A DNA stretch of 64,000 bases from Lepidodermella squamata. Lineage: Eukaryota > Animalia > Gastrotricha. Of the stretch, positions 17,327 through 40,384 are shown piece by piece. The stretch spans positions 1,116,001-1,180,000 of the forward strand of contig JBLDXI010000021.1 of assembly GCA_047495785.1 (NCBI GenBank). The letters are read 5' to 3'. A program made the translations under genes and the position numbers. Within the stretch, counting starts at the first letter, position 1. Every line of letters begins with the position of its first letter. Under the pieces are notes generated by a model. It saw only the letters and a program-made list of their open reading frames with translations, was not told the DNA's origin and made no database searches.

Positions 17327-19643
17327 ATGAAAATACTTGAAATCTATGCGTGGGTGATTTTTGGCCTAGTTGTTATTCAAGTCGCCGAGGTACCTATCGA
17401 ACTACAATTTAGTATCTAAAGATCCACTTTTCACGTTTTCGAATTTCAGGGAAAATTTGAGAACTGTAAAAGCGGTGTAATTACCGATATTGCGAAAATT
17501 CGGCATTATATTGCTGATTGGAGTGGAACGATTGCTGAATTGTCCACGAAATCCGAGTATGCCAGCTGGAACTGGTCAACCAACATAACAGATGCAAATG
17601 CGAAAATAAAGGTAATTTTTTTAACTCAAGATTTGTCATTTTAGCCCGAATAATTCAATCATCTATTAAGGAAGAGTCGAATAAACTTTTGGCCATTAAA
17701 AGCAAAGAGTATTGGACTATTGCGAGGTGTATCGACTGCGAGAAAGCGAATTGTTCGCAAGAAGAAAAGCGCCGACTTTGGGTTGGCTACAGCAGCATTG
17801 GACCGGCTGCTCTACCTCCTAAATCCTACGCTAACGTGAGAATATTTTAAGAGCTAATAGTCAGAATTAAAAGGCGAGCAAAAATTCGCAGCTCCAATAT
17901 TCCATCACAGTTATGCTTGGAACGCTTTCAGTGGCTCAAGTTTGTCGAGTGGATGAAAGAACCGCAAAGAAAACCTGTTTGTCAGAACCTGGTTATAGAC
18001 TTGGCGAATTTTACGAACGGAGTTTATTTCGAAATTATTTTGCAGAACTGGATGACCTTATGAGCCAATCAACTGACTATTGTACGCTGCAATGGGCTTG
18101 GGAAGGTTGGCGCAACGTAACAGGCCGGAAAATTCGAGGGTATTTCATGTCCTATGCCGTGCTATTAAATGAAGCCGCAAAGCTGAACGGCTTCAACAAT
18201 GCGAAGGAGATGTGGACTGCCGATGTTGTACACGATGATCCGACGTATTTCGAACAACTCGAGGAATCTTGGCTGAAAGTCAAGCCCCTGTATGAACAAC
18301 TGCACGCTTATGCGAGACGAAAGCTGAGAGACGTTCGGTATCCGAAATACGCAAAATTCTTTCCAGCAAGTGGGCATATTCCAGCTCATATTTTGTCGAA
18401 CATGTATGGCCAGAATTGGGGATCTCTTATCAATCTGTTGAAGCCTTATCCAGAAGCTTCTGATTTTGATCTCACTGCTTTGCTGAATCAAAACGTGGGT
18501 TCATCTCGATCTCGCTTTGCTCGGTTAATTTTAATAATTACATTCTAGAAATCAACTGTGGAATCCATTTTTCGGGAGGCTGATCGGTTCTTCCAATCGA
18601 TAGGGCTTCGTCCGATGGTAAACGATTTTTGGGCCAAGTCGGTTTTTGAGCAGAGGAATGATACCAAGATGGTGTGCCATGGATCAGCTTGGGATTTCAA
18701 TGTTCAGACTGATTTTCGGGTCAAAATTTGTGCCAAGGTTTCCTACGGGTACTATGGAACCGCTCATCACGAAATGGGTCATACTCAATACCACATGCAG
18801 TATAGCAAACAGCCGTTCGAGTTCCGCGAAGGTGCAAATGGGGGATTCCACGAGGCCATTGGCGATCTTATTGCTCTCTCGGCACTCACGCCAACTCACA
18901 TTAAAGCGATTGGCCTATTGCCAAAGGACTACAAGGAAGATAAAAGTAATTTCTTTTCCTGAACTTCGCAGGACATGTTATACATTTTTGCAGGGACTTC
19001 GCTTAGCGCACTGATGACCATGGCTCTGAGTAAAGTACCTTTATTGCCGTTCAGCTACATTGTCGATAAGTACAGATGGGCAGTTTTTGACGGCAACATC
19101 TCTTTTTCTCAGCTCAACTCTGAGTGGTGGAAGATGAAGTGCCGCTATCAAGGTTTTGTACCGCCGGTTCGTAGAACTGAAAATGACTTTGATGCCGGGT
19201 CGAAACACCACGTAGCGGGATCGATGCAGTACGATCGTTACTTTTACGCTCGTATTTTGGAGTTTCAAGCCCACCGCCATCTTTGCAGGAAGATTGGCTA
19301 TACCAAGGACTACCATCTATGCGACATCAGTGGTCACAAAGAAGAAACTTCTGCCCTGAGGGAAGCTTTGGCTTTGGGTAAATCAAGGCCTTATCCCGAT
19401 GTGCTGGAAATACTGACGGGCAGCCGCAAATTGGACTCAACTGCGATGGTCGATTATTTCAAACCTCTCTATGACTGGCTGGTCGAACAGAACAAAGGTA
19501 TTGTCGATTTTTTCCTGAAATAAAACTGGCACATTGTCTCTTGAACAGAATCAGGCGAACGTGTTGGATGGGACGATGAGTGTCCAACACATTTACCGGA
19601 ATCATCATGTGGCGATTATTCGAACGTGATACTGATGCCATAA
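17327..19643 (+). CDS. ACE: Angiotensin-converting-enzyme-like peptidase (M2), single domain, no membrane anchor; copy 1
   Basis: Signal peptide exon, WAWEGWR, GHIPAH, CHGSAWDF, zinc motif HHEMGH, EAIGD, FDAGSKHH..YDRYF; ends GDYSNVILMP*. Confidence 0.93.
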
Positions 19644-20433
19644 TTATGCAAAATGTATCGGAAAAATGCATGTGTCTTAATTAAGAGCTAACATTTTGGT
19701 TAACGCATCAACATATATAGGTTATCATACAATCGTGTTATCCTTTGGCAATTCTGTGGAATAAAAGGTGTACCTAGTTTATAATTGTTGATAGCTATAC
19801 TTATGCCATTTTTAGGGGTTCGCCGGGATGATTCTTGCGTGAACCTTGACGTCTCCGTGGACTAAACAGGGCTTGAATTTTGATTATGGTTTTCTGAAGC
19901 CGGCTTGCAGGATTTTACATCGCAAGGGCTGATGAGATGTCAGGTGGTAAGGAAGCCATACGGAAAAATACCTTCTGGACCAGATTATTCTGGCTAGTTT
20001 TGCTGCAAGTCATTTTTAGGGACGTTCGGTCTCATACTTGTTCAAGGCATCGGGCTGAGATTCACAAATCTTCAGGGCCTATTCCGCGTAGTCAGCAAGG
20101 TTGGGGCAGTGGTACCGCTTTGCTTTGAGTGCTTTGATGTGGCTCGGGCACATTTTCGCCCAAACATTCATGAAATCTGGTGTATAGGTATGTATTTCAG
20201 ACATATTTCAGGGTGCACATTTCTCTGATGTTGTGACATCGTGAGTGAGAGAAATCCAGATCTCGGTCATATTTCGTTATCATTTTTATAATGTTAGGTG
20301 CTTAATCGGTAATATAACCTGATAAGATGCGGGAAATACCCGTGAATTCGTACTCTTAATGCTCGACTAACTTGCCGACCGTTCCCAAATTATAAATTCT
20401 ATCTAGCTTTTCAACGGCTTTTATGCTGGAGTA

Positions 20434-22614
20434 ATGGTTACGCATCACTTGTCGTGGAAATTTAGTGTGCTATCCGTAATTTTCGGCTGCTTTTCGATAG
20501 TTTCAGCTAAATTGTCAATATCCCATGGTTCGATTTGCTTAACGGCAACACTATTGGGCTTTGCTGCTTTATGCACCGGCATCGCATCCGTTTTAGCCGG
20601 TTATTTGGCAGTTTTTCTCCCGATATCGCGCCTCCACAGTAGCATTCGTACCGCATTAGTTCACTTTTGCTGCAATGTCTATTTCAGCATTCAAGGTTAC
20701 TTCTACTGGCGGCGAATTTTCAGGTCAACAAATGACGTCAGGGAGGCTCAGGAGAACACTCTCAAGCGGATTTTGCGGCAAAATGCAGCGACTGAGTATG
20801 GCCAGAAAGTGAAACTTGGGGATATTAAAGACTCATCTCAGTATCGACTCAGACATCCTTTGACAAGCTATGATACTTTCCAGGAGTATATTGAAAAAAC
20901 TGCAAACGAAGGTTCTTTTTACACAGAATAGCAAGACCTCAATTTTTAAAACATTTTAATTCCAGGTGTGCAAAATATGTTGACTAGTCAGGATATTATT
21001 CAATTTTTCCTGAGTTCCGGAACCACTGGCAAAAGCAAGAAAATTCCTGGTAATGTAGTCGCAACGAATTCTCGAGGCGAGGGTCTTTACCAGTACGTAT
21101 TTTCATATTATACTTGTTACATTTTCTAAAGCTTTTTGACTACGATCCCAGCTTTCATTTCATCTCCTATTTGCTACCGACTGGTCCCTTCCTAGCACCC
21201 CTGAAATCGCTTTTAATCTCATTCAGCATCAAGCTTTCATCCACAGTGTGCGGCATTGTTATGACCCCTGTTTCTTACATACCCCGGCAGTTTCAATCTA
21301 CCGAAATATATCTGCCCCGTTCGACCCCGGATCAAGCTCGGATAGAGATTTCTGAAAGCGCCCAGACTTACTTGCACTGGCTTTTCGCCCTGTACGACAC
21401 CGAACTCTGCAGAATCGATTGCGCTTTCAGCGGCGGCCTCGTTGCGGCTCTTGAATTCCTCGCGAAAAATCACCAACAGCTTACTAAAGATATCGAATTT
21501 GGAATGATAAGTGACAGTCATTCTTTAGGAATTCCCGACGACGTAGCTGGAAGAGTCTCAGACCTAATGTGGAAAGATCCCGACAGAGCTAAGGAGATCG
21601 AAGCTGAATTCGCGAAAGGATTTCAAGGGATTGTCACTCGTCTTTGGCCTAGGGTCAACATGTGCTATGTCACTGTATCAGGAAGTCACGCCTGTGCCCT
21701 AGACCGGCTGAAGTTTTTCTTCGGACCTGATGTTCATTTCTACTCGATGATTTACGCATGTAGCGAGTGTGGCGTTATTGCTGCTAACATGGCTCATCCT
21801 CATCTCGGAAACCCTGTTTCGCTGAAACAACAGTTCACGATGCTGCCGGATGTTGGCGTCTTCTATGAATTCATTCCTATCGATGACGAAGGTGCAAAAA
21901 CTGTGGGAGAAACAGTGCTGTTGCATGAAGTTAAGGTTGGTTGCCGTTATGAGTTGGTAATCACCTGCGATGCTTCAGGGCTTTATCGCTACCGAATGGG
22001 GGATGTGTTGAAAGTCGTTGGACTCTACAACCAGTCGCCGGTCATTGAGTTTTGCTCTCGAATCGGAAGTATGCTAGACGTAGTCGGCGAGAAAACTGGC
22101 GAGGATTCTGTGTTCACAGCCCTGACGTCATGCGTCCAACACAACAAGTGGCTTGGCGCTAAATCCATCGTTAATTTCTCATCGACTGATTGCTTCTCAT
22201 TCACGAAGACGATAGAAGCCACGTCTGATAAAAGATTCGATAATATGAAAGGCGACCCTGGGTCTTTGTTCTACGTCATCTTCGTCGAACTTGAAGGGTT
22301 GGAAAGGAAGTTAACTGACGAAGAAACAACGGCTTTTGACAAAGAGCTGCAGAGATGTGCTCCGCGATATGAACATTATCGGAAAGTTGAAAGAATAACC
22401 GCGCCAAAGGTAACGTTTTGCATCTACGAAAAGCTGAATTTAATGAGATATGATTTTATTTCAGGTCTTTGTTTTGGCTCGCGGCTCCTTCGAGAAGATG
22501 AAGCAACAGTCTCTGGCCAAGTCAGGAAACGCTTCAAACCAATACAAGACACCACGATTTATCAAAGATATCGAAGCTATTCAGCTACTAACAGGCTATG
22601 CTTTTTTATATTGA
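20434..22614 (+). CDS. GHDC: GH3-domain protein (acyl-adenylating amido synthetase family), copy a
   Basis: Four exons with an N-terminal hydrophobic segment, LSSGTTGKSK, YACSE, GLYRYRMGD and C-terminal NQYKTPR. Confidence 0.92.
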
Positions 22615-23058
22615 CCTTAGGCCTATAACAAAAACAATATCAATGAAAATCCATAATAAACAAATGTAATGATTAATCGCTGCTGACAGTGGCTTGTGAA
22701 TCCTATAAATCCTACTCGACTACTGATATCGAAGTTTCAAAGCGGAACCGGAAAAACTCGGATTTGGCGTGGAATTTGATATCGAGGCATTTCGATATCT
22801 AGTGACGAACAAACCGGGAGCCAGTTTTGACTATTTTGTGATATTTTCAGGGTCATAAATTCTTGTTTTTTTTTATCAGTACGGGACCGCAGGCGAGACC
22901 TATAACCGAAAACTGTATATCCGCTGTCTTATCAGTAAACTGTTTCTGTTTTTTGCTCCATAATTGCAAGACTATTTTCCCCACAAAACACACCACAGAA
23001 TTGTCTTAAATTTACTTCATCATAGTGAATTGTTAATTAATAATTGTTACTGATCAAG

Positions 23059-24009: not shown

Positions 24010-24292
24010 TTTCACTTCCGAATAACTGTCTTCATCTTCCTGATAACTTATGTCTATTTCTATTTTCCGAATCACATGTTCAGTTCCTGATTTGAATGAC
24101 GACTGAATAAAAAGTGTCCTTCGCCAAAAGCCCCTTTTTCGAGGAATAGATAGTGAAAAAGTTATTTCCTTATCACATTTTATCATACATAACTCGTGGG
24201 AAGTGAGATAGAGCCAAACCCTCACTACGCCCACCTCATTTTCAAAAGCGATATAAAACCAAGAATAGAGCTATAGTTGACAAAAATCACAC

Positions 24293-27200
24293 ATGGCTAA
24301 TGTAAACGCAGTATTTTGCGGCTTGGTCGGCATCTTCAGCGGTGACGGTAAGAAAGAGACCGTTCCATTTTCTGTAAGAAACGTCAAGATCAACGCAAAT
24401 GTACGAGGATGGGCAGCTGCGACAAGCGCTGAAATAATTTACGAAAACACGTTTGAAAAGGAAGCTCTGGATGCTAGATTCGTCTTCCCAGCTACTCAGC
24501 ACTACGGCCTCTACAAATTCGAGGCAATTATCGAGGATGGAAAGCAGCCGGTTGTAGCCAAGCTGCAATCAACGCCCGAAACTCCAACAATCCAATCGTA
24601 ATTTTTGATAGTAGTTAATTTCGCAATTTTCACCTGGTTTTTTTTAAGGGGGATTGCCGATGAAATTGTGGCCGATGTGTATCGAATCCCGATCGGGAAA
24701 GTTCCGATTGGAAAGCGAGTGACTATCAAAATAGGTGTCGTGCAGCAACTTCGCCGCAAGCCGGAAAATGGGCAGCTAATTCTCGATTTCGCCCCTGTTC
24801 TACTGCCCCGGCAACTGCCTCGCTGGGATCTCAGCCCTGACGCGAATGTTGTCCGCGATAAACTCCGACTTCAGTCAAACTACGTCGCAGTTTCAGACGT
24901 AGAATATTCGCTTACTCTATCTTGTAATGTGACGCTAGGAGTTGGCGGGAAAATTGGCAAAATCTGGCTCGAAAAGTTTGTCGGCGATCTCAGCGCGGTT
25001 AAAATCGACATAACGCCTGATAATTCCGTAGCAATTTTGACGCTGAATAAAGATCGATTTCGCTCATCGACTAATATTGCAATCGCGATTTTACCTGGTG
25101 ACATCAATTTGCCAGTTGTTGAAGCCGAACCGGGAGTTGACGGCGGTGCCAATTCGTGGTACGAGAAATCAATAGCAACAGCTTGGTACGAACCTGGTAC
25201 AATCGCAGCCTCGGTTAATGCTGAAATTGATGAGGATTTACAGGCCGGGCAGGGCTACGAGTACTGGTTGATTCTTGATCGATCTGGATCCATGTTCGGG
25301 CCGAAGATCGAGGAAAGCAAGCGACTTATGCTGCTTTTTGTTAAGAGTCTTCCACTCGGTTGTAAATTCAACATTCTCGGATTCGGTTCAACTTTCGAAG
25401 TCCTCTTTAAAGACGGGTAATTTAAATTTAATTTAAATTTTCAAAAATTATATGAGACTCTGTTGATGATGCTGGCACCCTCATTTTGACGGGTGCCAAT
25501 TTTTTATTAATTAATTGAAAAAAATCGATTAATTAATTGATTTATTGATTTTTATTGGGTCCAAATATTTGCACCACTAAAATTGAAGTTCCAGCGCTAA
25601 ATTAAAGCGTCCTGGCACTAAATGTTTCAGATTCCTTGCGATTTCGGCGTTTTCGTTTTTTGATTGATACAGATGCCCTCCCTGAACCTGGGATTTTTAT
25701 TTCAGATACACGGTGCTCTATAAGCTAGGTAGAAAAATTACCGATGCTGGGTTCCAAGACGGCTGATATCGGGAAAATCACTGATTTGTAAAATCAATAC
25801 TTGGAATCGATATCGGCTCTATAGGATGAAGTATAACTCTTAAACTGACCGCTCAAAGCGCGAAATACGCGTAATATGAAGGTCTATTGGTTAGGCAAGA
25901 TTACAAAAAATGTGAGATTATAGTGAAGACTGGAAACTTGAAAAACCATATTTACGGGAAATCTAGTGCTGGAGTCTCAAATTTAGTGTTGGAACTCTAA
26001 ATTTAGGGTGCACACTTGGCACACCCATTTTTATTGATTATTGATTTTTCCAACATTTTAATTATTCGCCCAATATTTTAATATTATGTTTTAGGCTGGG
26101 TTTTCAGCTTTTTCGTTTTAGTTTTTTTCCGGCTTTTTATAATTTTAAATTTATCAATTTCAGATGTGTCGATTATGACGAGATTAACGTTGAAACTGCT
26201 CTGAAATACGCGTCGACCTTGCGAGCCAACATGGGTGGAACCAGCGTGATGGGACCGTTAAATCACATCTTCGGCCAAAAGCAAACCCCTTCGCGATGCC
26301 GATTCATCATTTTCATGACAGACGGCCAATTTGCGGAATCACTCGACAGCGTGAAACGCGTCATTATCCCGCAAACCGCAACATCCCGACTGTTCACAGT
26401 CGGCATAGGAAAAGACGTCAATCGATCAGCGCTTGAAGAATTGGCCCGAGTTGGCAGTGGAATGTCGGAATTTATCGAGGGAATCATGGATTTCCAGCCG
26501 AAAGTCATCCGTTTGATGAAAGCGATGAGCAATCAAAGTTTAGCTGGGTTCGAGCTTGACTGGAAAATTGATGGAGGCCTGGTTGATAAACGGATCCCGG
26601 TCAAACTCGCCCTTGCCTACTACTACGGCAATCCTATGACTCAAACAGTCGGTATAACTAGAACTGCCGTTAACGAGTCGCCGATTTTAGGCGAAGCCAC
26701 ATTCATTTCTTCAAATCAACCGAAACAAATCGTCAATTTCAAGTTACCATTTGGCGGTAAATCGAACGAGGACGATCTTGTCCTTCACCGACTCGCAGCT
26801 TTTCTGCAGTTGAGCGAAATGTTGGAGAATCCTAATAGGAGCAGTGAAGCGGCTAAATTCTCCGAGGCAACGGGTATTTTGTGTAAATACACGTCCTTCT
26901 CGATTCAAAGCCCTGTTGAAGCGAAATCGTTGCCGAATTTAATTTCCGACGCGACTACAACCGCCGGCTTTGACGCGAAAAATTTCGCGAAGGCTGATAT
27001 TAGGTCTGGTAAGGCTGATGACTCATCCGTGCAGCTGGCAGAGGAAGTCGTAGCGCCTATCCTATCTTTCGAAGCAATAGCCGGCCTGCAATTAGTCAAC
27101 GGATCTTGGCAATTGAATGACGCCCTGGTTAAGGTGGTTAATTCGCAGTTTTTACCAGATGTCGCCTCACTTCGAGATCGAGTCGTGAAAAGTCTAGCGA

Positions 27201-30200
27201 GTCGACTCACTGCCAGTCCTGATTTCATGCGTGACGATGACGTAATCGGCACTTTAGTTGGCTTGGCAATTCTCAGCCGGCGGTTTAACGAACGCCGAGA
27301 TCAGTGGGTCATTATCGAACGTAAAGCTCACGCATTCCTCCGAGCTCGAAAGGTGACCGGCGTCAATCGCGAGTTGATCTATTTACTGGCGACACGGTTG
27401 GACGGAGCGGCCGGGCCGACTGATGACGAACTTGAGCGGTACAACGAGCGGGTTGAAATTTTCGAACGCGTCGATCAGCATGCACTGGCTGTTTCGAATG
27501 AAAATCGCCACGATCAATTTCAGGATATTGTCACGCATTTAATCAACACCATATGGATAGGAAGTAAGCACTAGGTATTTTTTGAGTGGGAAATTTATGC
27601 GGGAGTGGCCTACTTCAGATTAGCGACATATCGATGAGAGTCATAAAATTAAGTTTTTTTTTCGTCTTATCAGGAATTTTTACTCGGCTCATATCTGAAA
27701 TTTTGAAAAAATCCTCCTTACTAAATTTTTTATTGAAATTAAATATGAGCAGCTATTTCAAATTTTACGGTAAGTTCATTGAAAAAAATGTGTAGTTTTT
27801 TGACAGCCTCTCGGGATAATAACATCGGCATTTCATTTCGTAGAGTCATTTCCGCATATAATAAAAAAAACGCATCGGACACGCTACAAATTACCGCACC
27901 GTGGGAACACATTTTTTCTAGACTTAATCAATGAATAATTTTGCTTGCATGGCCGTGTATCTGGAAATATCGGCCTACATAATATAAATAATGTAGTGTT
28001 GAAAATTCCGTCCTAATTCCATTGTGAAATATAATAATGAGGCCTCTATTCTACCCGTGGAACTATGTTTCAGGTGATTTGGAGAAAGCTCGCGCCATTT
28101 TCATCTGGTTGTCGTCGAAAGACCTGGCGAAGATGCAGTTCGACAACGCCACGCCCGGGTCGCCTGAAAGCATTTTGATGGAGCTGAAAAACGGCCGTGA
28201 AACTTACGCCCACGTCTATGAAATGCTATGTACCCGAGCCGGGTTGAATTGCGTCGCGATTTCCGGCTACGTCAAAGGCATTGGCTACCACCCGGGCATG
28301 CAGTTCGACGGCCGTGATCACCAGGGCGCGTGGAATGCGGTTAAAATCGATGGCAAATGGCGACTTGTCAACGCCAACTGGGCGGCTCGGCGGGTTAGCT
28401 CTGAAGGGCTACAGTACCAGCTGGATGAATTCTTTTTCCTAACCGACCCCCGTCAACTCATCCATACGCATTACCCTAGCGACCCGGCATGGCAGTTGCT
28501 GGATAAACCTATCAGCCTACAACAATTTGAATTACTGCCACCGGCGAAGAGTTTGTTCTTCACCCTTGACATGCGATTTATCGGCGAGACATCTCGGGCT
28601 ATTGTTAGCGCACCAAAGGGTGTAGTCACCCTGAAAATCGCCCACAACCGCCCCGAGATGACACCTCTCGTCGATTTTGATTATTCCCTGATTGACGCTA
28701 ATGAACCGCAATATTTCACGGACAACAAACGTCTCCATGGCTATGTTTTTCACGAAATTTCAGCCTCTGGCGTGGCTAGTTTTGAAATTCGACTGCCAAA
28801 ACGAGGCGAGTATCGCTTTGTTATCTTCGCCGCTGTTTCTAAAACCGGCGAGCCGTTTTCTATGATCAAAAAGGACGCGCATCAAATTTATACGGATATT
28901 TGCGAGTGGAAAATTGTCGCTGATAACGATGGCGGCGGCGTCACGTGGCCGGCATTCCCGCCGTGTTCCGGCGCCAAGTGGGGTGCGCCGCATTTCGAAA
29001 TCGCAAAGTCACGCGGTTTCAGCTTGATAAAGCCGATCGATGCGAAAATTAAAGCCGATAAAAATGGCCAAGCCGAAGTTGCCCTTGATATCGCAATCAA
29101 GCAGGAGATGTTTTTTGTCGCAAAACTGCGCTCTAATGAGGTCAGAATGTCTTTTAAAGGACGCCTTAATCGATCCTAATTTTTTTATAATTTTTATTCA
29201 AAAAATTAGTTTAATTAATTTTAAAATTAATACAGCGTTTCTCCTGCAAAGCAAAAACGGTTCTATGCCAATTGAGCAAAACGAGATTAGAGCAAAACGA
29301 CACGAGAGCAAATTTAATAATTAATTGCAGCTGTTATTTAAATAAATAAAATTTGCCCTCGTGTCGTTTTGCTCTAATCTCGTTTTGCTCAAAAGTCATT
29401 TTGCTCTAATTTCGTTTGCTCAGAAGTTGTTTTGCTCTAATTTCGTTTGCTCTAATATCGTTGCTCAAAAGCCCTTGCTCTATTTTCGTTGCTCAATTTT
29501 CGTTTGCTCAATTGGCATGGAACCGCAAAAACATAGGTTGCGGGTTCAGAGAGTGGTTCAGAAACTCTAAAATGAGAAACGAGTCACTTAAGGCCAGAAA
29601 ACTTTTAGAAAAATTCAAAAAATCACTGCTTCATGCTTAATCCGGAGAAATTTGGTCCAATCGGGTAAAATACCGAAAATTACCGAACCAGTTACTTACT
29701 ATCGGGGTTTACCGGGTTTTATCCGGTAACTTTTTTATTTCTTCGGTTAAATCGCGGGTAAAAGATGGAATATTCTCTCGATAGGTTTAACTACAAAAAA
29801 TTAATTGAATTTCCTAAAAAAAAGTTGCCAAATTAAAAAAAATTGCTGCGCCTGGAAACACGCTGTAATATAATTTAAATTAATTCTGATTTAAATTTTT
29901 ATTTTTTATTTTTTAGGCTGACGAAGAAGTTTTGTCGCGATCAATTCTGCAACGGCGAGTTGGTAACCAAGCAATTTTTACGGTATCAAGCCCAGATCGA
30001 GGCGAATTCGGCCTTGAAATATTCTGCAACCGAGTCGATCAAGCTCGTCATGAGGATGAAAATGCCGATACGTGTGCTGTTTTCCCGTTTTGCCAATTCT
30101 TAATCACCAGCGAAGTAGCTAGTGTTGCCCCGCCCCTGCCCGCATTCCCACCAAGCTACCTCGGCCCCCAGCCTGCCTTCGCGAAACTAGGCCTAGAATG

Positions 30201-30852
30201 CCTCAGCCACCCTGATCCTCTCCTAACAGTTGATGATTTATCAACCCAGCTTCAGGTGGTTTTCGGTCTGAACGAGCCGGGTAAATCGGTCCGAGCTGTC
30301 GCTAATCTCATCCGCCTAAACGATTCCGGCGATGAAGATATGACAGAATTCGTCCTGCACCAGTCGCCGTTATCTGGCGACCGTATCGCCTTTGTTTGCC
30401 GATTTCCGAAATCGGGCACCTACAAACTTGAAATCTACGCCTTGGCTAATGATGCTGTTCAAAAATCGAACTCGATCCCATGTGTCTACAACTACGTGGT
30501 TGAAGTCGGGGGCGGCGGGCATAGTCAGGACTTCGATCAAGCTGTCATACCCTTCCCGAAACAGTACTCGCAATGGCATGACGGCTGTTTCCTGATAACG
30601 CCCATCGACGCCGCGATTAAAGGCATGGCCGACTCTGTAACTATTCAAGTTTCTGTCGGCAATAACGCGAGAAGAGTTCTGGCTGTAGTAAACGACATAT
30701 CTAAAGCGTTTGAGGCTAATAGCGATGGGATCTGGGAAACAGTTGTCCCAGCTGATATGATGAAGCCTAACAACAAACTGGCTGTTATGGCCAACTACGC
30801 GGCAGATCCGCCTGGCTCGTTCGCTGTCTTGCTCGAGTATCAAATCGTTTGA
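24293..30852 (+). CDS. Fusion protein of about 1491 aa: VIT + VWA (VWA5A-like) + hillarin/KY-type transglutaminase-like domain + three Ig-like repeats
   Basis: In-frame exons 24293-24597, 24649-25416, 26164-27563, 28074-29140, 29917-30852. VIT (YENT..ARFVFP..KFEA), MIDAS DRSGS/GGT/TDG, then VDQHAL..|SDLEKARAIF, SGYVKG, AWNAVKIDGKWRLV, EFFFLTDP..THYP and three P..G.Y/F..IF/Y repeats. Confidence 0.82.
25558..26021. mobile_element. Degenerate MITE/foldback element in an intron
   Basis: Imperfect inverted repeats of about 65 bp at about 25558-25628 and 25958-26021. Confidence 0.55.
29233..29865. mobile_element. Tc1/mariner-type MITE (CAGCGT termini, TA target-site duplication); same family as 44589-45299
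   Basis: TA|CAGCGT...ACGCTG|TA; the right arm AAAGATGGAATATTCTCTCG...AAAGTTGC.AAATTAAAAAA is shared with about 45200-45299. Confidence 0.75.
29258..29525. mobile_element. Nested MITE with ~15-bp internal tandem repeats
   Basis: Terminal inverted repeat CGGTTC(T/C)ATGCCAATTGAGCAAA; flanking direct repeat (CAAAAA, or GCAAAAAC if the ends are GG/CC); TTTGCTCTAATTTCG-type units. Confidence 0.85.
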
Positions 30853-31114
30853 AAAAAATATCAACAATTAAATTAATTTGTTATTGTGTGATTGACTTCA
30901 GTATTTTCGGTGCGAATAAACTGCCATATTGATTTAAATAATTTTTGACTAATTAAAAAATGTATATTTTAAGCCTAATCAGATTAAATCGTCTTCGTAA
31001 TGGATACCCTGGATTTTTCTAGCGAATTTTGAGAGAAGCCATAAAATCGCATCAAAGCTCATGTTTTGACTAATGGTGAATATTTGCGAGTTTTCAGTTT
31101 AATAAAAACTTAAA

Positions 31115-33508
31115 ATGTACGGCTTACTTTTGAATGCATCTGTTGCCTATCTTCAACACGTCTATCCAGCGATTTACAAGGATGTATTGGAAGAACTCGG
31201 ATTTTCTGAGCAGGTATGTTTGAAAATATCCGCAAAAAGATCATGGTATTAAGGGCGATATTTTAAAGCGAGATCTGGATCAATACCAAATTTATTCGGA
31301 TAAATTATTTGGTCGCATCACGAAGCTCATGTCAGAAAAAGCTGGCTGTGCCGAGGATCAGTTGATGGAAAGTTTCGGCGAATATTTCGTCGACTATACC
31401 ATTCGCGTCGGCTACAACGATTTGCTCTTCTCGCTCGGACGGTAATAAAAAATTCGAAAAAAAATTCCTAAATTTTTTCGAACCTTTTAAGGACACTCTC
31501 GGACTTGTTCAACGAGCTCGATAATTTGGTATTTTTAAGAAAAATTACAATTTTATCAAAAAAATGTGGGGTATTTTACAGCACGAGTACATCCGATTTA
31601 CCTACCCAAAACTGAAGGCTCCTAGCTTTATTTGCCTGAACGAGTCTGTTGATGGAATAACCCTACTGTACAGAAGTCGCCGGCGTGGGTAATTTTTTAA
31701 ATAATTTTTTTGTAAATGTACAGTTTTTCTCTTCTTTCAGCTTTCAGTCCTACGTCAAAGGAATCCTGCGAGGAGTTTCGCAAAAGTACTACGCGACGTC
31801 CATAAGCATCGACATCGCATCGACTCGAGAAGTTGGCGAGCGTCTTGAAGTTGTTTACAAGTAAATTATACCGAAAAAATAGATCCGCCTTAATTTTTCC
31901 CGATCACTCTATTAGTCTTGTATTCGACAATTCAAGCCGATACGCCGCTAGCGGTGATGTCATCTTACGAGACACGTATTTCAAGAACAAGGTCATCATG
32001 GCTGATACTATTTTTGAACTCTACCCATTCCACATTTTAATCAACGATAACATGGGTATTAAATATATTTCCGTTTAATTATCACTTTTCTATCATTCGT
32101 TTTTCGAATCAGAAATCCTGTCAATTGGAAGAGGGTTAAAACAGCTTTTCCCTAAGGCGCTGCGAGAGGATTTCACGTCGCTGTTCGAGATCATCCGCCC
32201 GGATATTGAGCCGAATTTCAGAACAATCCAACACCACCTTAACAATATTTTCGAGCTCAATTGCATTTTGGCGCGTTTTGCAACGGGCGATGCGACCATG
32301 GACGCTTCGAAAGGCAAATCAGGCGGTTTGACAGTTAGTAAAACCGATCGAAGTAGCGCTGGCGATATACAGACCCAGATGACACCGGGTGGCATGCCGA
32401 ATCGATCGATGGATAGCACGAAAAGCGAAGATAATGGTAAAAAAAATCACCTCAAACCGAAAATTTATCAATTTTTCTGTTTTTTTCAGAGTTAATTTTG
32501 AAAGGTCAGATGATTTTCATTGAAGAGTGGGGCTCTGTGATGTTTGTCGGCTTTCCGCTTCTAATGATGCCTGAGCAAATGCTGAAAATTGGCCTGTATC
32601 TCAGCGACCTGAGCCTATTCGACTCGTCACGTGACCTAGTTATGGCCGCGGCTCAGGACGCCGCTGATCGGCATTTGACCCAGAAACTACTCTCAGTCAA
32701 GTCTGACATAGTCGCCGAGGCTAATCACATGGCTGAGAAGGCGAAGGAAGACTGGCAGCGGACCCACTACGCCCTACTGCCGTCGAGTGTCTCGCAGCGA
32801 TTGATGCGAGCTGAACCAGCCTATGCCATGGCTTGCATGTTCGAACACGCTAGCGTGATTTCGGTTGAAATAGTCGACGAGCGGTTGCACAGTGTTGACA
32901 AGGCGCTGTTCGGCCTCATCGAGGAGGTGCATAAAGAGGCGCAGCAAATTTGCAACAAGTACGACCTGTTCAAGGTCGATGGGCGGCTGACGGATTTCAT
33001 CATGCTAGCCGGGGTTCCGGATGTTACGAATACGCCTGAATTGCTGGCATTTCGAGCCGCGCAAATGCTAGCTAACCAATACACGGTTCGAATCGGCATT
33101 GCAACGGGCCAAGTTGCAGCGGGTGTCATCGGGACTAAGCTTTTAGCGTACAAGTAAGCTTTTTCAGTCTGATAAATCCGATTATTAACGAAGCCTTGAA
33201 AAATTTAATTATTATTTTTATCCGCTATTATAATATAGGCCATTTGGTACTGCGGTGAAGTCGAGCCGGAAATTGATGCTTATCTCTACGGTTCGTCGAA
33301 TTCTTGTTGATGAAGCCACGTGTCAGGCGTGCGCTAATGAGAAGGACGTAGAGAGCGAGCCGGGGCCTGAATCACAGGATTCGCAGGTTAATTTTTTTCT
33401 AATATTATCTTTTGAGTATTACTATCTATTTTTCAGTTAAGTCACAAGACTTACTGGATTCGAACGAGGAAAACAACAAAAGAACCTGGCTCTACAAAGA
33501 AGAAGTAA
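31115..33508 (+). CDS. Atypical soluble guanylate-cyclase-like protein (H-NOX + HNOBA + degenerate cyclase domain), many short exons
   Basis: MYGLLL start, FGEYF, LDNL|HEY proximal His, PSF, YRSRRRG|[33 protein letters not shown] and [15 protein letters not shown]. Confidence 0.9.
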
Positions 33509-33861
33509 TAAATCCGGATAAACGGGGCGAAACGGATGAAATCCGAGACCAATTTATTTGTTAGATTTAATTTTTGTTGTGCTTCAAGTCACATCTCGTG
33601 ATTAATATTGGTACGCACAGACAAAAATAATAATAAAAAGAATGTGAAACTCTTTTCTATCAGAAAAGCGCTATTAAACTGGACTGAAAATGAGCTCATA
33701 ATTGATGAATCACATTAAATGACCGGGATCAGTGTAGCCATATATTATAGGAAATGGCTGTTAATACAATCTAACCTTTACCACCTTGACAAGGGTGATT
33801 CTCCCAAAGATCAAAATTAAAATATCTCTGTTAAATGTGGTTCCTATTGGAAATTGAATCA

Positions 33862-36175
33862 TCAACAGGCCAGTATCACGTTCGAATAATCGCCACACGG
33901 TGATTCCGGTAATTTAGCTGGACACTCCTCGTCCCAGCCAATGCGCTCGCCTGAAGCTGTTTTAGATACGCCATTATTATTCGATATTTGAGGTACAAAT
34001 CGAAGGAACTTTACCTTTATTTTGCTCGACCAACCAATCATAGAGAGGCTTGAAATAATCGACTATCGCAGTTGAGTCCAACTTGCGGCTTCCCGTCAAT
34101 TTTTCCAGCACATCAGGATAAGGCTTCGATTTACCAAGAGCCATTGCTTCTCTCAGAGCAGATGTTTCGTCTTTGTGGCCACTGATGTCGCATAGATGGT
34201 AGTCCTTGGTATATCCGATTTTCCGGCAAAGATGCCGGTGCGCTTGAAACTGCAAAATGTGGGCGTAAAAGTAGCGGTCGTAAGGCACAGATGAGGCTAT
34301 GTGATATTTCGCCCCGGCATCGAAGTCATTTTCAGTCCTATGAACTGGCGGTACAAAACCTTGATATCGGCACTTCATCTTCCACCACTCAGAGTTGAGC
34401 TGTGAAAACGAAATGTTGCCGTCAAAAACTGCCCACCTGTATTTATCCATGATATAGCCGAATGGTAGGAAAGGAACTTTATCTAAAGCCATTGTCATCA
34501 ACGCATTAAGAGAAGTCTCTGCAAATAGCTAGTTGAAACGGTAAGATGCATGTTTAAGAGAAAAATCACTTTTATCTTCCTTGTAGTCCTTTGGCAATAG
34601 GCCAATCGCTTTAATATGAGTTGGCGCGAGTGCCGAGAGAGCAATAAGATCGCCAATGGCCTCGTGGAATCCCATATTAGCACCCTGACTGAACTCAACC
34701 GGTTGTTTGCTGTACTGCATGAAGTACTGTATGTGGCCCATTTCATGATGAGCAGTGTCGTAGTACTCTCTCGCAGCTTCAGCGCACATTTTGATTCGAA
34801 AATCAGTCTGGACTTTGAAATCCCACGCCGATCCATGGCACACCATCTTAGTATCATTCCTCTTCTCAAAAACCGACTTGGTCCAAAAATCTTCTACCAT
34901 CGGACGAAGGCCTATCGATTGGAAGAACCGATCAGCTCCCCGAAAAATAGATTCCACAGTTGATTTCTAGAATGTAAATATCAAAAGTAACCAAGCAAAA
35001 CGAGATAAACCTACGTTTTGTTTCAACAAAGCTGTTAAATCAAATTTAGGAGCTTCGGGATAAGGTTTTAACAGATCGATGAGATAGGTCCATTTCTGGC
35101 CATACATCTCAGACGAAACATGAGCTGGAATATGCCCGCTTGCTGGGAAGAATTTCGCGTATTTCGGATACCGAACTTCTCTCAGCTTCCTTCTCGCATA
35201 GGCGTGCAGTTGTTCATACAGGGGCTTGACGTTCAGCCAAGATTCTTCGAGTTGGTCAAAATACGTCGGATCATCGTGTACAACATCGGCAGTCCACATT
35301 TCCTTCGCATTGTTGAAGCCGTTCAGCTTTGCGGCTTCATTTAACAGCACGGCATAGGACATGAAATACCCTCTAATTTTCCGGCCGGTTTTATTACGCC
35401 AACCTTCCCAAGCCCATTGCAGGGTACAATAGTCGGTTGAGTGTTTCATAACATCGAACAAATCTGCGAAAATTGCGACAATAGAATTAAGTTCATCTGC
35501 AAAACATGTTATACCAGGCGCCAGTGGCAAACAGGTTCTTTTCGAAGATCCTCTGTCCATATGACATACTCGAGAAGAATGACTAGCCACCATAGCTCCA
35601 ACAGAATATTGGTACTGCATAGAATTTTCCTTCAACATTGAAATTTCGTCTTTCATCGGTCACTCACGTTTTCAAAGGCTTTTGCTGGTAGAGCTGCGGT
35701 TCCGATGTTGCTGTAGCCAATCCTTAGCCGTCGCCTTTCGTGTTGCGAACAATTCGCTTTCTCGCAGTCGATACATCTAGCTAAAGTCCAGTACTCTTTG
35801 TTTTTCATGGCCAACTGTTCACTCATCTCAAGCTTCAATCAATCGAGTGGCATTCAAAGTTGAAAATAATCATTTCATTTTTACCTTCACTTTCGAGTTG
35901 GCTTCTGTGATGTTAGTTGCCCAGTTCCAGCTGGCATACGCCGATTTCGTGGACAATTCAGCCATCGTTCCACTCCAGTCAGCAATATACTGCCGGATTT
36001 TCGTAATATCGGAAATAACGCCGCCTTTGCAGCTTTCATATTTCCCCTACATTTTTCGAGCAATCTCTCAATTCGGGAAAAGTTCAATTTCAGTAAAATA
36101 ACGTGGACGTACCTCTGCGATTTGAGCAAAGATAAGCCCGAAAATTGCTAATTGCATAACTGAGTTGTTGTCCAT
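33862..36175 (-). CDS. ACE: ACE-like peptidase (M2), no membrane anchor; copy 2
   Basis: Signal peptide, HHEMGH, EAIGD, FDAGAKYH..VPYDRYF; ends GDYSNVILAC*. Confidence 0.93.
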
Positions 36176-37020
36176 TTTTTAATTTGAAACAACCTAGGTA
36201 TCAAAAATCAATGCGGGAAGCGCATAATTGTCCACCGTTTAACTTTTCTGAGCGATCGTAGTCAATGCCCCTAAATCCTAAATTGAGAACACCCGTAAAA
36301 TTGTGATATTGCATGCAAAATAACTTGCTAGAATGGATAAAATTTGCTTGTAATTGCGTGGGAAAATATTACTCACATAATAGATGCTAACTTCCTCTTT
36401 TCACTGGGAATTCTTCGATCTCTAGTAACAGTCTTTAACTTGCTGGAGCAGCTGTGTTGAGAGCTTCACATCATCTTATAAGCCGCTAGTTGACATTCAG
36501 CTGCGAAAAGGCAAACAACATGACTGAATTGGAAAAATAATACAGTAGATAATTTGTTGTATGTAGGTGGTTTGGATTAGACATTCCACATGAATTGAGA
36601 TCCGCACATTTGTATTTTGTTCGGAGCCAAGCTTTCTGTGAATTTTTGCAAATAACTGCCATTTCAAAAGATGATACTTGCATTGATTGTCCCAAGAGTT
36701 TCAAATTCAAAGTTTCATGAGAAATATCAATTTCTATGTACGGTAATGGGTGCCGAATTGCTTCCGCTGCGCCAGCTTAGATTCATAGGATGAGTTGGAG
36801 TTTTTCTTTAAAAAATCATGGTCATATGCCACGGATCAAGAAAAGCGCGCTCCAAATGCGGCAACAGAGTGACAGGTTTACAGCTTAGGAACGCAGGTAT
36901 AATAAGACACATTTCTAAGCTAGCTTTTATTTGATATCATAAAATTTAAGAACAACAGCGAGTGTTTGTTCCCGAAATTGATGGGTTCTTAACAAGTTGG
37001 ATGCGCTCAGATACTAAATA

Positions 37021-37837
37021 CCGTAAGGCGGTCTTACTTCGGACAAAAACGTGTTTTTGGGGCTTAGTTTTTCGAGGTGAACGAATTTTTTGACGGGCTT
37101 TATGTCAAAAGATGCGCCTTGAAAAACTGCATATTCTAGTATCAACTCCGGTAAAAAAATAATTTTTCCCGTACAGGTATTAAAGGAAAACTGGTCCGGC
37201 TAACTTCGGACACAACTGGGGTAATTTCGGACAGCTCAATGTGAATATTTATATTGGGGTCAAAGTTCACATTAAAGCGAGATAAAACTTGTGAGCAGAT
37301 TTAAGAAAAAAAAACTTAAAAAAAACCAAAATGCATGATGAGGGATTCGAACCCTCAATATTGAATTGTGCTCCCAACGCAGATTAGTGCTGTTCTCAAT
37401 AAAATATGGAGTTTAATAAATGTCAAGGTCAATTGACATCTTTTTGAATTTCCCGTAGTTTGAAGCTGTCCGAACTTACCCGGGACAAAATTTGTTTTCT
37501 AAAGTATTTCCTGATCAAAATTTTCGTTAAAAATTGGTTTGAACATGACAGCATTACTAAATCGATGGTGCTCTATCTTTTCCGCTTCTCTCCAGCAAAA
37601 AATACCTACCTACCAAAAGTTAGCAATTTTGGGTCGCGGGACATGACTGCCAAGAAGTTGGACTATTCTTCGCATACTTATCTGTTTTCAATGTTTTTGG
37701 TGTCATTTGAAAGCCAAGACTCAGGGCTATCTTTTGCAATTTGAACGGTCTCTATATTCACCGGGGCTGAGGAGAAATTCCAGTTCAAAGTCAAAAGTGT
37801 CCGAAGTTACCCTGTCCGAAGTAAGACCGCCTTACGG
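37021..37837. mobile_element. Non-autonomous pogo/Tc1-mariner-like element
   Basis: Perfect 25-bp terminal inverted repeat CCGTAAGGCGGTCTTACTTCGGACA, TA on both sides, internal TTCGGACA subterminal repeats, no transposase. Confidence 0.92.
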
Positions 37838-37882
37838 TACTCTTGTTTTAAGAGTTTGTTTTTCTTCCTCAATGTTGAGTAC

Positions 37883-40384
37883 TTATGGGGCTAGAATAAC
37901 GTTTGTATAATCGCCACATGGTGATTCCGGTAAATTGACTGGACACTCATCGTCCCAACCAACACGTTCGCCAGACTCTGTTCAAGACAATCGTGTCAGT
38001 ATTATTTAAGGAAAGCATCAGCTATCATACCTTTGTTCTGCTCGACCAGCCAATCATAAAGAGGCTTGAAATAATCGACCATTGCAGTTGAGTCCAGCTT
38101 ACGGCTGCCCGTCAGTATTTCCAGCACTTCAGGATATGGCCTTGATCTACCCAAAGCCAAAGCTTCTCTCAGGGCAGATGTTTCGTCTTTGTGACCACTT
38201 ATATCGCACAGATGATAGTCCTTGGTATAGCCAATCTTCCGGCAAAGATGACGGTGCGTTTGAAACTGTAACATGTAAGCGTAAAAGTAGCGGTCGTAAG
38301 CCATAGATCCCGCTACGTGGTGTTTCGCCCCGGCATCAAAGTCATTTTCTGTTCTACGAACCGGTGGTATTAAGCCTTGATACCGACATTTCATCTTCCA
38401 CCACTCAGCGTTGAGCTGAGAAAACGAGATGTTGCCATCAAAAACTGACCATCTGTACTTATCAACGATGTATCCGAACGGTAGAAAAGGAACTTTATCC
38501 AAAGCCATTGTCATCAACGCGTTCAGAGAAGTCCCTGCAAAAAATTCATCACATTTATAGCAAAATTTAGGAAAAGAAATCACTTTTATCCTCCTTGTAG
38601 TCTTTTGGCAGTAGGCCAATCGCTTTAATATGAGTTGGCGTGAGTGCCGAGAGAGCAATAAGATCGCCAATGGCCTCGTGGAATCCCCCATTTGCACCCT
38701 CGCGGAACTCGAACGGCTGTTTGCTATACTGCATGTGGTATTGCGTGTGGCCCATTTCGTGATGAGCGGTGTAGTAGTACTCTCGAGAAACTTCGGCACA
38801 CATCTTGACTCGAAAATCAGTCTGAACTTTGAAATCCCAGGCCGAGGCATGGCACACCATCTTTGTGTTATTTCTCCGCTCGAAAATCGAATTTGTCCAA
38901 TATTCTTTTAACATCGGAGGAAGCCCTATCGATTGGAAGAACCGATCAGCCTCCCGGAAAATGGATTGCACAGTTGATCCCTATTGAAATGACAACATGG
39001 AATTAACTGGAACACACGAGAGATAAGGTAGGCCATTATCCCTCAGAGTTTATCTGTCAAATTGTATGAAACTTCGAAGAATAGCATGCAAATAGCGGGG
39101 AATCGCTTCTAGGCGTTGTTTTAGTATGGGTCATGCAATTGTTCCTGATTGACCACGCAATGACCTTGACTTCGTTGACTAGATTAGAGATAAACCTACG
39201 TTTTTTTTCAGCAAAGCTGTGATATCAAAGTCTGGAGCTTCCGGATATGGTTTCAGCAAATGGATGAGAGAGCCCCAATTCTGGCCATACATGTTCGACA
39301 AAATATGAGCAGGAATATGCCCGCTTGCTGGGAAGAATTTTGCGTATTTCGGATACCGAACGTCTCTCAGCTTCCTTCTCGCATAGGCGTGCAGTTGTTC
39401 ATACAGGGGTTTGACGTTCAGCCAAGATTCTTCGAGTTGTTCGAAATACGTCGGGTCATCGTGTATATTACTTGCTGTCAACAACTCCTTCGCGTTGTTG
39501 AAGCCGTCCAGTTTTGCGGCTTCGTTATACAGCAATGAATAGGCCATAAAATACCCTCTAATTTTCCGGCCGGTTTTATTACGCCAACCTTCCCAGGCCC
39601 ACTGCAGCGTACAATAGTCAGTTGATTGTCTCATGACATCGTCCAGTTCTGTAAAGAAATATCGATGATAATTAATAGCCATGTGCAAATTTCGCTAATT
39701 CATTTATATTACCTGGCTCTAGTTGCAGACAGGTTTTCTTCGTAGATGCTCTATCTACGTGACAAACTTGAGCCACTGAATGTGTTGCGAGCATTGCTCT
39801 GAGAGAATATTGGAACTGCGAATATTCGCTCGCCTTTAAAATTTGACAATTAGCTCTTGAAAGATTTCTCACGTTTGCGAAGGATTTGGAAGGTAGAGCA
39901 GCCGTTCCAATGCTGCTGTAGCCAAGCCAAAGTCGGCGCTTTTCTTCATGCGAACAATTCGCTTTCTCGCAGTCGATACACCTCGCAATACTCCAATACT
40001 CTTTGCTTTTAATGGCATAACGTTTATTCGGCGCTTCCTTCATACATAATTCAATTAATCGGGCTAAAATGATCAATCTTGATATACAACTTTACCTTCC
40101 TTATCGCATTTGCATCTGTTATATTACTTGCCCAGTTCCAGTTTGCATAAGCGGATTTCGTGGTCAGCTCAGCCATCGTTCGACTCCAATCGGCAATATA
40201 TTGCCGGATTTTCGTAATATCGGTGATAACGCCACCTTTGCAGTTCTCAAATTTACCCTGAAATTCGAAAAAACGTACAAGGTAGAGAATTTGATAGTAA
40301 ATTGCAGTTGAAAATATGTACCTCCGCAACTTGAATGACAACTAGGCCGAAAATCACCAGTGTACAGATCGCAAGTAGTTTCAT
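37883..40384 (-). CDS. ACE: ACE-like peptidase (M2), no membrane anchor; copy 3
   Basis: MKLLAICTLVIFGLVVIQVAE signal, [32 protein letters not shown]; ends GDYTNVILAP*. Confidence 0.93.

Follow-up and report, generated by a model that had tools for sequence, protein, structure and literature searches.

The three anchorless ACE genes (copies 1-3) in the 64-kb window, which denotes the whole stretch of 64,000 nucleotides analysed here from Lepidodermella squamata, form a lineage-specific trio, and in our assessment (probability roughly 0.6) they would encode functional, secreted, single-domain ACE-family zinc dipeptidyl carboxypeptidases whose pockets and chloride sites are altered. All three copies conserve the zinc site and the general base, together with the transition-state residues and the Q281/K511/Y520 dock, and purifying selection acts on their scaffold; the chloride-binding positions and those of S2 to S2′ are replaced, and the replacements differ among the three.

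Exactly five Peptidase_M2 (ACE) genes were found in the window, five HEMGH motifs occurred across its whole length (Table 1), and no ACE-like DNA beyond the five copies was detected by tblastn across the window. Splicing at GT-AG introns gave intact ORFs for all five, and the models of copies 1-3 were free of stops and frameshifts; the exon joins of all five copies are models built here from the DNA letters. The outer bounds given by the initial annotation, 17327 and 40384, coincided with the start positions of the spliced models of copies 1 and 3, respectively.

Table 1. The five ACE genes, with exons and selected codons of copies 1-3 (tACE number and residue @ window position, from codon mapping and alignments)
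Feature	Window position	Strand	Details
ACE copy 1	17327-19643	+	8 exons, 650 aa; GT-AG introns 38-60 nt; Pfam and PDB ACE matches
Copy 1 exons	17327-17389, 17450-17611, 17671-17835, 17874-17991, 18046-18494, 18549-18945, 18994-19497, 19549-19643	+	
Copy 1 codons	18213-19253	+	220 W @18213; 224 V @18225; 279 Y @18405; 354 G @18681; 377 Y @18750; HEMGH @18768; 391 H @18792; 407 G @18840; 457 L @19041; 489 K @19137; 512 H @19206; 518 M @19224; 519 Q @19227; 521 D @19233; 522 R @19236; 527 R @19251
ACE copy 2	33862-36175	-	8 exons, 649 aa; spliced model and Pfam
Copy 2 exons	36113-36175, 35885-36046, 35668-35832, 35515-35629, 35015-35463, 34570-34966, 34015-34518, 33862-33956	-	
Copy 2 codons	34259-35296	-	220 W @35296; 224 V @35284; 279 Y @35104; 354 G @34834; 377 Y @34765; HEMGH @34747; 391 F @34723; 407 M @34675; 489 K @34375; 512 Y @34306; 518 V @34288; 519 P @34285; 521 D @34279; 522 R @34276; 527 H @34261
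ACE copy 3	37883-40384	-	8 exons, 651 aa; spliced model and Pfam
Copy 3 exons	40322-40384, 40096-40257, 39873-40037, 39713-39833, 39200-39648, 38584-38980, 38031-38534, 37883-37977	-	
Copy 3 codons	38275-39481	-	220 L @39481; 224 N @39469; 279 Y @39289; 354 A @38848; 377 Y @38779; HEMGH @38761; 391 H @38737; 407 G @38689; 489 K @38391; 512 H @38322; 518 M @38304; 519 A @38301; 521 D @38295; 522 R @38292; 527 Y @38277
ACE copy 4 (comparator)	53338-55843	+	10 exons, 672 aa; HEMGH @54810; canonical pockets
ACE copy 5 (comparator)	57143-60912	+	8 exons, 667 aa; HEMGH @60004; canonical except P407S, I521D

Nine exon ORFs of copies 1-3 matched the Pfam profile Peptidase_M2 (PF01401) at 138-239 bits, the cut-off being 23, with E-values of 1.8e-41 to 2.1e-64 for copy 1, 6e-41 to 1.8e-70 for copy 2 and 4.7e-40 to 1.3e-67 for copy 3. 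Together they covered positions 115/128-574 of the 581 in the profile, and human ACE structures (PDB chains) were matched at E-values of 1e-53 to 1e-99. Residues were compared with a panel of 103 full-length homologues and with the human testis-ACE construct (P0063), which served as the numbering reference only, and were checked again in HMMER alignments without gaps against ACE chains from the PDB; residue roles in copies 1-3 were assigned by alignment from those in human ACE. The gluzincin zinc site, HEMGH plus E411 lying 24 residues downstream, was present in all five copies, and H353, H513 and Y523, which serve the transition state and the substrate backbone, were unchanged in all five, the alignment to human ACE being ungapped here. 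Equally unchanged in the five was the carboxylate dock Q281/K511/Y520, which receives the C-terminal carboxylate of the substrate (PMC7642307, PMC12820606) and sets the dipeptidyl-carboxypeptidase mode. The claim of the initial annotation that the zinc and catalytic residues are kept in every copy was borne out, as H383, E384, H387, E411, K511, H513, Y520, R522 and Y523 were identical in all five. Because copies 1-3 retain Q281, K511 and Y520, they are predicted to be ACE-type enzymes and not ACE2-type mono-carboxypeptidases. That they are active, as had been proposed, is well supported at the sequence level by the intact ORFs, the canonical splice sites, the zinc, catalytic and dock residues and a dN/dS of about 0.2.

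The N-termini of copies 1-3 were hydrophobic, with a 12-residue hydropathy of 2.35-3.16. At the C-terminus, the maximum 13-residue hydropathy was only 0.26-0.57 in copies 1-3 compared with 2.5-2.6 in copies 4 and 5: in copy 4 a Pro/Thr/Ala-rich stalk precedes a hydrophobic tail (13-residue hydropathy 2.62), copy 5 has a hydrophobic tail (2.5), and copies 1-3 stop about 28 residues before the end of copy 5. The hydropathy scan of the gene models therefore agreed with the earlier description of copies 1-3 as anchorless, and their assignment as secreted soluble ACEs with a putative signal peptide is well supported by hydropathy for the 3′ exons modelled here, to which alternatives may exist.

Every residue change that had been listed for copies 1-3 was recovered in our alignments. 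In copies 1/2/3, respectively, W279 was replaced by Y/Y/Y, R489 by K/K/K, P407 by G/M/G, F391 by H/F/H, V518 by M/V/M, P519 by Q/P/A and A354 by G/G/A, and position 512 was H/Y/H. To this list we added W220L in copy 3, D377Y in copies 1-3, F457L in copy 1, F527 to R/H/Y in copies 1/2/3, and I521D, which copies 1-3 share with copy 5. R489K, W279Y, F391H and F512H each occurred in 0 of the 103 panel sequences, and A354G in 2 of 103. The proposed replacement of Y224 by V/V/N was also correct, since a two-residue insertion near this position, present in 11 of 11 clade members, falls after Y224; it was so placed because the eight canonical members keep an aromatic residue at W220+4. HMMER and MAFFT-auto put His opposite Y224, an arrangement that was rejected by the clade-wide comparison and by the L-INS-i alignment. 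Published assignments, in which F512 and V518 form S1, A354 lies in S1′ and F457 and F527 lie in S2′ (PMC12820606), together with those of the chloride sites (PMC3894356, PMC7642307), back the view that the changes fall in the pockets. As to copies 4 and 5, which had been called near canonical, the description fitted the pockets of copy 4, but copy 5 carries the two changes given in Table 1. An apparent R522S in the metagenome copy L001_C, obtained by gapped tblastn, was traced to intron read-through, and splicing by hand gave Ile at 522.

Chloride site 1 consists of R186, W485 and R489, and site 2 of Y224, R522 and W220, the last through water (PMC3894356, PMC7642307). Copies 1-3 departed from the canonical site 1 in that R186 and W485 were kept, R489, which is Arg throughout the panel (103 of 103), was Lys and the shell residue W279 was Tyr. 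Loss of the site does not follow from R489K by itself, because human ACE2 binds chloride at the equivalent of site 1 through Arg169, Trp477 and Lys481, its site 2 being empty (PMC7642307); an ACE2-like site 1 with Lys at 489 thus probably survives in copies 1-3. The canonical site 2 was also altered: R522 was kept, Y224 was V/V/N, positions 407, 519 and 521 were changed, and in copy 3 W220 was Leu in addition, whereas copies 4 and 5 retain Y224, W220 and R522. The stronger argument for altered chloride dependence comes from site 2, where the Tyr224 hydroxyl is gone and the 407/519/521 shell differs, with W220L as a further change in copy 3. For these reasons site 2 may be weakened or lost in copies 1-3, and their chloride activation should then be reduced or changed. 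The new specificity and altered chloride dependence that had been proposed may thus apply to copies 1-3, as an inference from sequence.

In the tree, copies 1-3 formed a lineage-specific clade with 100% support and a stem of 0.5 substitutions per site. Copy 5 grouped with its metagenome orthologue, copy L001_B, as sister to copies 1-3, and copy 4 with the metagenome copy L001_A. Pairwise dN/dS among copies 1-3 was 0.18-0.21 at dS 0.47-0.62, indicating that these are maintained genes. Their scaffolds had been described as almost identical; long identical blocks do exist, but the description was overstated, the protein identity being 79-85% at the dS just given. Of 102 near-invariant family columns, 11-14 were changed in copies 1-3; copies 4 and 5 had 4-5 such changes and no panel member more than five. 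With a list of 38 pocket positions (chloride and subsites) that was assembled partly after seeing the data, 16 of 38 varied among copies 1-3 against 122 of 527 elsewhere in the protein (OR 2.4, p=0.017), whereas the same positions gave OR 0.09-0.45 in five canonical ACE comparisons; with a stricter list of only the positions named in the cited literature, 8 of 20 varied. Pocket dN was about twice the dN of the remaining protein, and pocket dN/dS was 0.12-0.43, not above 1, on only about 18 synonymous sites. These values fall short of showing positive selection on the pockets, and relaxed constraint confined to them would yield the same pattern; relative to copies 4 and 5, synonymous sites were too saturated for a dN/dS on the stem branch.

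It is unlikely that copies 1-3 are functionally ordinary ACEs in which near-neutral substitutions accumulated, with essentially normal specificity and chloride activation and with differences mainly in the place or time of expression, through dosage or regulatory subfunctionalisation. The inverted pocket-versus-rest conservation speaks against this, as do the replacements that are absent or nearly absent from the panel and the fact that Y224 became a non-aromatic V or N and not F, even if R489K is compatible with chloride binding as in ACE2 (PMC7642307), the key site 2 ligand R522 is retained, Y224F or a changed 407 or 519 is seen in several panel ACEs of other phyla, and the subsite positions 282, 376, 379, 403 and 453 vary family-wide anyway. 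The number of near-invariant positions broken, and a pocket that is the most variable class among copies 1-3 yet has dN/dS below 1, might instead suggest a drift toward non-catalytic, binding-type ACE-like proteins, a fate that has been suggested for Drosophila Ance-2 to Ance-5 and mammalian ACE3, with the pocket changes reflecting relaxed constraint and not new specificity; inactive ACE paralogues are indeed common in Drosophila (PMC8648576). We regard such a drift as improbable, because the zinc, catalytic and dock residues were all kept in three copies across a dS of about 0.5-0.6 at a low overall dN/dS, and because the inactive Drosophila paralogues lost HExxH (PMC8648576) and copies 1-3 did not. 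An artefact of wrong exon joins, misalignment or unexpressed recent pseudogenes is scarcely credible: the gene models are our own and the Y224 column hinges on gap placement, but every listed residue is internal to a long exon and none falls at an exon join, exons 6 and 7 are ungapped against human ACE at every scored position (the sole exon 6 gap lies upstream of 354), the gap is fixed by the eight clade members with the aromatic residue, and the reading frames are open at low dN/dS.

Functional enzymes with altered pockets, our preferred reading of copies 1-3, have parallels in known ACE systems. Drosophila Ance and Acer likewise have a single catalytic domain, a signal peptide, no anchor and a complete zinc motif, and these paralogues are soluble and active with differing inhibitor and substrate preferences (PMC8648576). 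Copies 1-3 are not their orthologues, as they belong to a separate clade that also includes copies 4 and 5 and relatives from the metagenome, and they differ from them in carrying R489K, W279Y, H391 and H512 and in having no Tyr224. Human ACE2 shares the Lys at the tACE Arg489 position; in contrast to copies 1-3, its dock has Q281, K511 and Y520 replaced by Arg273, Leu503 and Phe512, and its S2′ is blocked, making it a mono-carboxypeptidase (PMC7642307). Copies 1-3 further differ from human ACE2 in being anchorless. The N- and C-domains of human ACE provide a precedent in which a few substitutions such as R186H, V518T and F391Y change specificity and chloride dependence with the scaffold unchanged (PMC3894356, PMC12820606); the substitutions in copies 1-3 (His at 391 and 512, Met at 518, Val or Asn at 224) are less conservative, and the human N-domain has lost chloride site 1 and kept site 2, a situation that appears reversed in copies 1-3. 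Oyster CgACE, with a single domain and a C-terminal hydrophobic anchor, resembles copies 4 and 5 (PMC3235092), whereas copies 1-3 have no hydrophobic tail. Mammalian ACE3 is an inactive ACE-like paralogue near an active ACE gene, with conserved positions diverged. Drosophila Ance-2 to Ance-5 resemble copies 1-3 as lineage-specific duplicates near active ACE genes whose conserved positions have diverged (PMC8648576). However, Ance-2 to Ance-5 and ACE3 lost zinc-motif residues, and in copies 1-3 HEMGH, E411 and every catalytic residue are present.

The ancestor of copies 1-3 may have been a copy-5-like gene with a hydrophobic, anchor-like tail that was then lost. A burst of change, corresponding to the long stem branch, would have come first and duplication into copies 1-3 afterwards; this duplication may have travelled partly with a neighbouring GH3-family gene and been followed by some gene conversion. 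The products would still cleave C-terminal dipeptides, from differing sets of peptides. In copies 1 and 3, S1/S2 would be narrower and His-lined (H391, H512, M518), S2′ of copy 1 would carry R527 and L457, and copy 2 would combine a canonical S1/S2 with an altered S1′/S2′. More tentatively, the trio may represent a secreted ACE-type battery in which diversifying change was aimed at the pockets, two members having a pH- or metal-sensitive His-lined S1/S2, with no chloride-2 switch and an ACE2-like chloride site 1 kept. If true, this would be an ACE subtype with chloride control opposite to that of the human N-domain, and a set of natural specificity variants on one scaffold.

ACE is among the best-studied drug-target peptidases, and the rules by which chloride sites and subsites govern its substrate choice are still argued from comparisons of the human N- and C-domains and from point mutants. 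Copies 1-3, at about 80-85% identity and with the catalytic core kept, differ in S1, S2, S1′, S2′ and chloride site 2 and could thus serve as a natural mutagenesis series; they would also offer a first view of what ACE does in an invertebrate lineage that has been poorly sampled. New specificities have probably arisen in the duplicated enzyme. Insects already provide familiar examples of secreted ACE-like peptidases that expanded and diverged within one lineage, which makes these genes useful and not surprising. When copy 1 exon 7 was used to search elsewhere for fragments resembling copies 1-3, one match within the length range covered was obtained, with 53% identity.

Judged from their sequences, copies 1-3 are ACE-family genes that are intact and have been maintained; the catalytic core is complete, an anchor is lacking, and their chloride-site and subsite residues are derived and unlike between copies. 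Five HEMGH motifs were found in the window by a six-frame scan, at 18768(+), 34747(-), 38761(-), 54810(+) and 60004(+), and no further ACE-like DNA was detected there beyond the five copies when tblastn was run with the final models. Spliced models were anchored on stop-to-stop ORFs, every frame-preserving GT/GC-AG join being scored against eight full-length homologues, and an intact model was obtained for all five copies; the starts proposed for copies 1 and 3 in the initial annotation agreed with these models. Database searches were run exon by exon, and the joined proteins were confined to the alignment, tree and dN/dS scripts. Introns across the five genes measured 38-219 nt, with the sole exception of a 1444-nt intron in copy 5 (window 57982-59425). 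Intron 5 of copy 3 (window 38981-39199) was 219 nt long, whereas the same intron measured 54 nt in copy 1 and only 48 nt in copy 2; this suggests an insertion in copy 3.

Spliced models of the five Peptidase_M2 (ACE) genes, numbered by position in the window
Gene	Window position	Strand	Exons	Protein (aa)
ACE copy 1	17327-19643	+	8	650
ACE copy 2	33862-36175	-	8	649
ACE copy 3	37883-40384	-	8	651
ACE copy 4	53338-55843	+	10	672
ACE copy 5	57143-60912	+	8	667

Nine exon ORFs of copies 1-3 matched the Pfam Peptidase_M2 profile at 138-239 bits (cut-off 23), jointly covering positions 115/128-574 of 581, and exons of these copies matched human ACE structures with E values of 1e-53 to 1e-99. Exon 7 aligned to these structures without gaps, and the single gap of exon 6 lay upstream of residue 354. 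Residues were numbered after the human testis-ACE (tACE) construct (index + 39, HEMGH beginning at residue 383) and checked in a MAFFT alignment of the five copies with 103 full-length homologues. In this alignment H353, H383, E384, H387, E411, Q281, K511, H513, Y520, R522 and Y523 were retained in all five copies, bearing out the earlier statement that the zinc and catalytic residues were kept throughout. The N-terminus of every copy started with a hydrophobic segment. Copies 1-3 ended shortly after the conserved Cys-Gly-Asp-Tyr motif, their best C-terminal 13-residue hydrophobicity window reaching 0.26-0.57; it was 2.5-2.6 in copies 4 and 5, which run on into a hydrophobic tail, preceded in copy 4 by a Pro/Thr/Ala-rich stalk. 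The tails lie at the extreme C-terminus (copy 4, window 55653-55843; copy 5, window 60233-60912) and resemble a GPI signal more than a membrane-spanning helix followed by a cytoplasmic tail. Anchored ACE is already known in invertebrates.

The same alignment confirmed every change that had been listed in copies 1-3 at positions 279, 489, 407, 391, 512, 518, 519 and 354, and added others. All tabulated residues sit within exons 5-7, clear of exon joins, by codon mapping. R489K, W279Y, F391H and F512H occurred in 0 of the 103 panel sequences and A354G in two.

Residues of copies 1-3 at changed positions (tACE numbering)
tACE residue	Copy 1/2/3	Remark
W279	Y/Y/Y	in initial annotation
R489	K/K/K	in initial annotation
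P407	G/M/G	in initial annotation
F391	H/F/H	in initial annotation
512	H/Y/H	in initial annotation
V518	M/V/M	in initial annotation
P519	Q/P/A	in initial annotation
A354	G/G/A	in initial annotation
D377	Y/Y/Y	additional
F527	R/H/Y	additional
F457	L/F/F	additional
W220	W/W/L	additional
I521	D/D/D	additional; copy 5 likewise D

Position 224 required separate treatment. HMMER and MAFFT-auto placed a His opposite Y224, and this placement was rejected since the loop of the whole clade has two extra residues, found in all 11 members (five window copies and six from metagenome contigs). A Tyr or Phe stands exactly at W220+4 in eight canonical clade members, with the same spacing in all other ACEs, and the gap falls after Y224 in the L-INS-i alignment. 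With the insertion after Y224, copies 4 and 5 retain this residue and copies 1/2/3 carry V/V/N, as had originally been read. The insertion, directly after Tyr224, is located at window 59449-59475 and equivalents, and is common to all ACE copies of the clade, including those on the metagenome contig L001 (ena:ERZ27333047:k141_23170) and on L005, another sequence carrying such copies.

In copies 1-3 and copy 5, Asp replaces the near-invariant Ile521, which adjoins the chloride ligand Arg522. We take P407, P519 and I521 to belong to the shell of chloride site 2, and F391 to be part of S2. The ligands of chloride site 2 are R522 and Y224, with W220 via water, P519 caps the R522-bearing helix, and chloride site 1 has R186, W485 and R489 as ligands within a four-tryptophan shell (PMC3894356; PMC7642307). 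S355, F512 and V518 make up the S1 subsite, S1' takes in A354 and V380, and S2' takes in F457, F527, Y523, K511, Q281 and Y520 (PMC12820606); in a docking study, W220, W279, F391, P407, F512, V518 and P519 were listed as channel contacts of longer peptides (PMC9987361). In copies 1-3, chloride site 2 is probably weak or lost, because its Tyr ligand is gone and its shell is altered. Chloride site 1 is probably retained in an ACE2-like form, since ACE2 binds chloride through Lys481, the equivalent of tACE 489 (PMC7642307), where copies 1-3 also have Lys; by this analogy, the earlier use of R489K as an argument for altered chloride dependence needs correction.

Copies 1-3 shared 79-85% protein identity among themselves, as against 49-58% with copies 4 and 5 and 42-45% with human testis ACE. 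Their pairwise dN/dS values were 0.21, 0.18 and 0.20, with matching dS of 0.58, 0.47 and 0.62, indicating that the three copies are not recent and have been held under purifying selection. The description of their scaffold as almost identical holds for blocks only (some 50-codon windows had dN = 0 at dS 0.24-0.30) and overstates the overall likeness. Among the 102 columns conserved in at least 97% of the panel, 11-14 were broken by copies 1-3, 4-5 by copies 4 and 5, and at most five by any panel member. Chloride and subsite positions varied among copies 1-3 at 16 of 38 sites versus 122 of 527 elsewhere (odds ratio 2.4, p = 0.017), on a list compiled partly after the data had been seen; with the list restricted to literature-named positions, 8 of 20 vary. 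The same positions were far less variable than the rest (odds ratios 0.09-0.45) in five canonical comparisons, namely copy 4 with its orthologue, copy 5 with its orthologue, copy 4 with copy 5, three lophotrochozoan-type ACEs, and human with amphioxus. Pocket dN among copies 1-3 was about twice that of the rest; positive selection in the pockets was not shown, the pocket dN/dS of 0.12-0.43 coming from only about 18 synonymous sites.

In the tree, the five copies and their metagenome relatives formed a single clade (100% support), within which copy 4 paired with L001_A and copy 5 with L001_B, both ACE copies on L001. Copies 1-3 formed a clade with 100% support that adjoined copy 5 and its orthologue (87%); the stem of this clade was long, at 0.5 substitutions per site. 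No orthologue resembling copies 1-3 was present in the 15 kb retrieved from the ACE array of the relative, and when exon 7 of copy 1 was used as query in a word search restricted by a length window, a single 53%-identical fragment was returned. Exons 1, 3 and 4 were closest between copies 1 and 3, and from intron 4 through intron 5 the closest pair was copies 1 and 2. Such mosaic identities indicate gene conversion, which explains why V224 and G354 are common to copies 1 and 2, and H391, H512 and M518 to copies 1 and 3.

It is plausible that copies 1-3 encode active secreted dipeptidyl carboxypeptidases of shifted specificity, and the initial reading of new specificity with altered chloride dependence is likewise plausible. 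Soluble active paralogues with differing specificities (Ance and Acer) are well known in Drosophila, as are inactive ones; copies 1-3 would be a new variant on an already familiar theme.

L001 (noted at 5020-6981) comes from an uncultured relative, a eukaryote in which at least five ACE genes, all poor in introns, stand in tandem. Its copy L001_C is long-branched and falls outside the group of copies 1-3; it has Y224F, H512, N518 and Q519, and R522 became Ile after hand splicing, changes that point to an independent paralogue without chloride site 2.

Two mutually inverted GH3-family genes (Pfam GH3, GH3_M) flank the ACE trio, one adjoining copy 1 (window 20425-22628, +) and the other copy 3 (window 41139-43359, -). 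Their identity is 92.6% at the protein level (over 420 aa) and 88-89% at the DNA level, and they were probably duplicated along with the ACE genes; the order, ACE-GH3 on the forward strand versus GH3-ACE-ACE on the reverse, is not that of a simple block inversion. ORFs matching ABC transporter ATP-binding and ABC-2 membrane domains lie upstream of copy 1 (window 13196-15277, +), and VWA, transglutaminase-core and KY-type Ig-like domain ORFs, followed by an HNOBA/cyclase-like ORF, lie between copies 1 and 2 (window 24293-33508, +).
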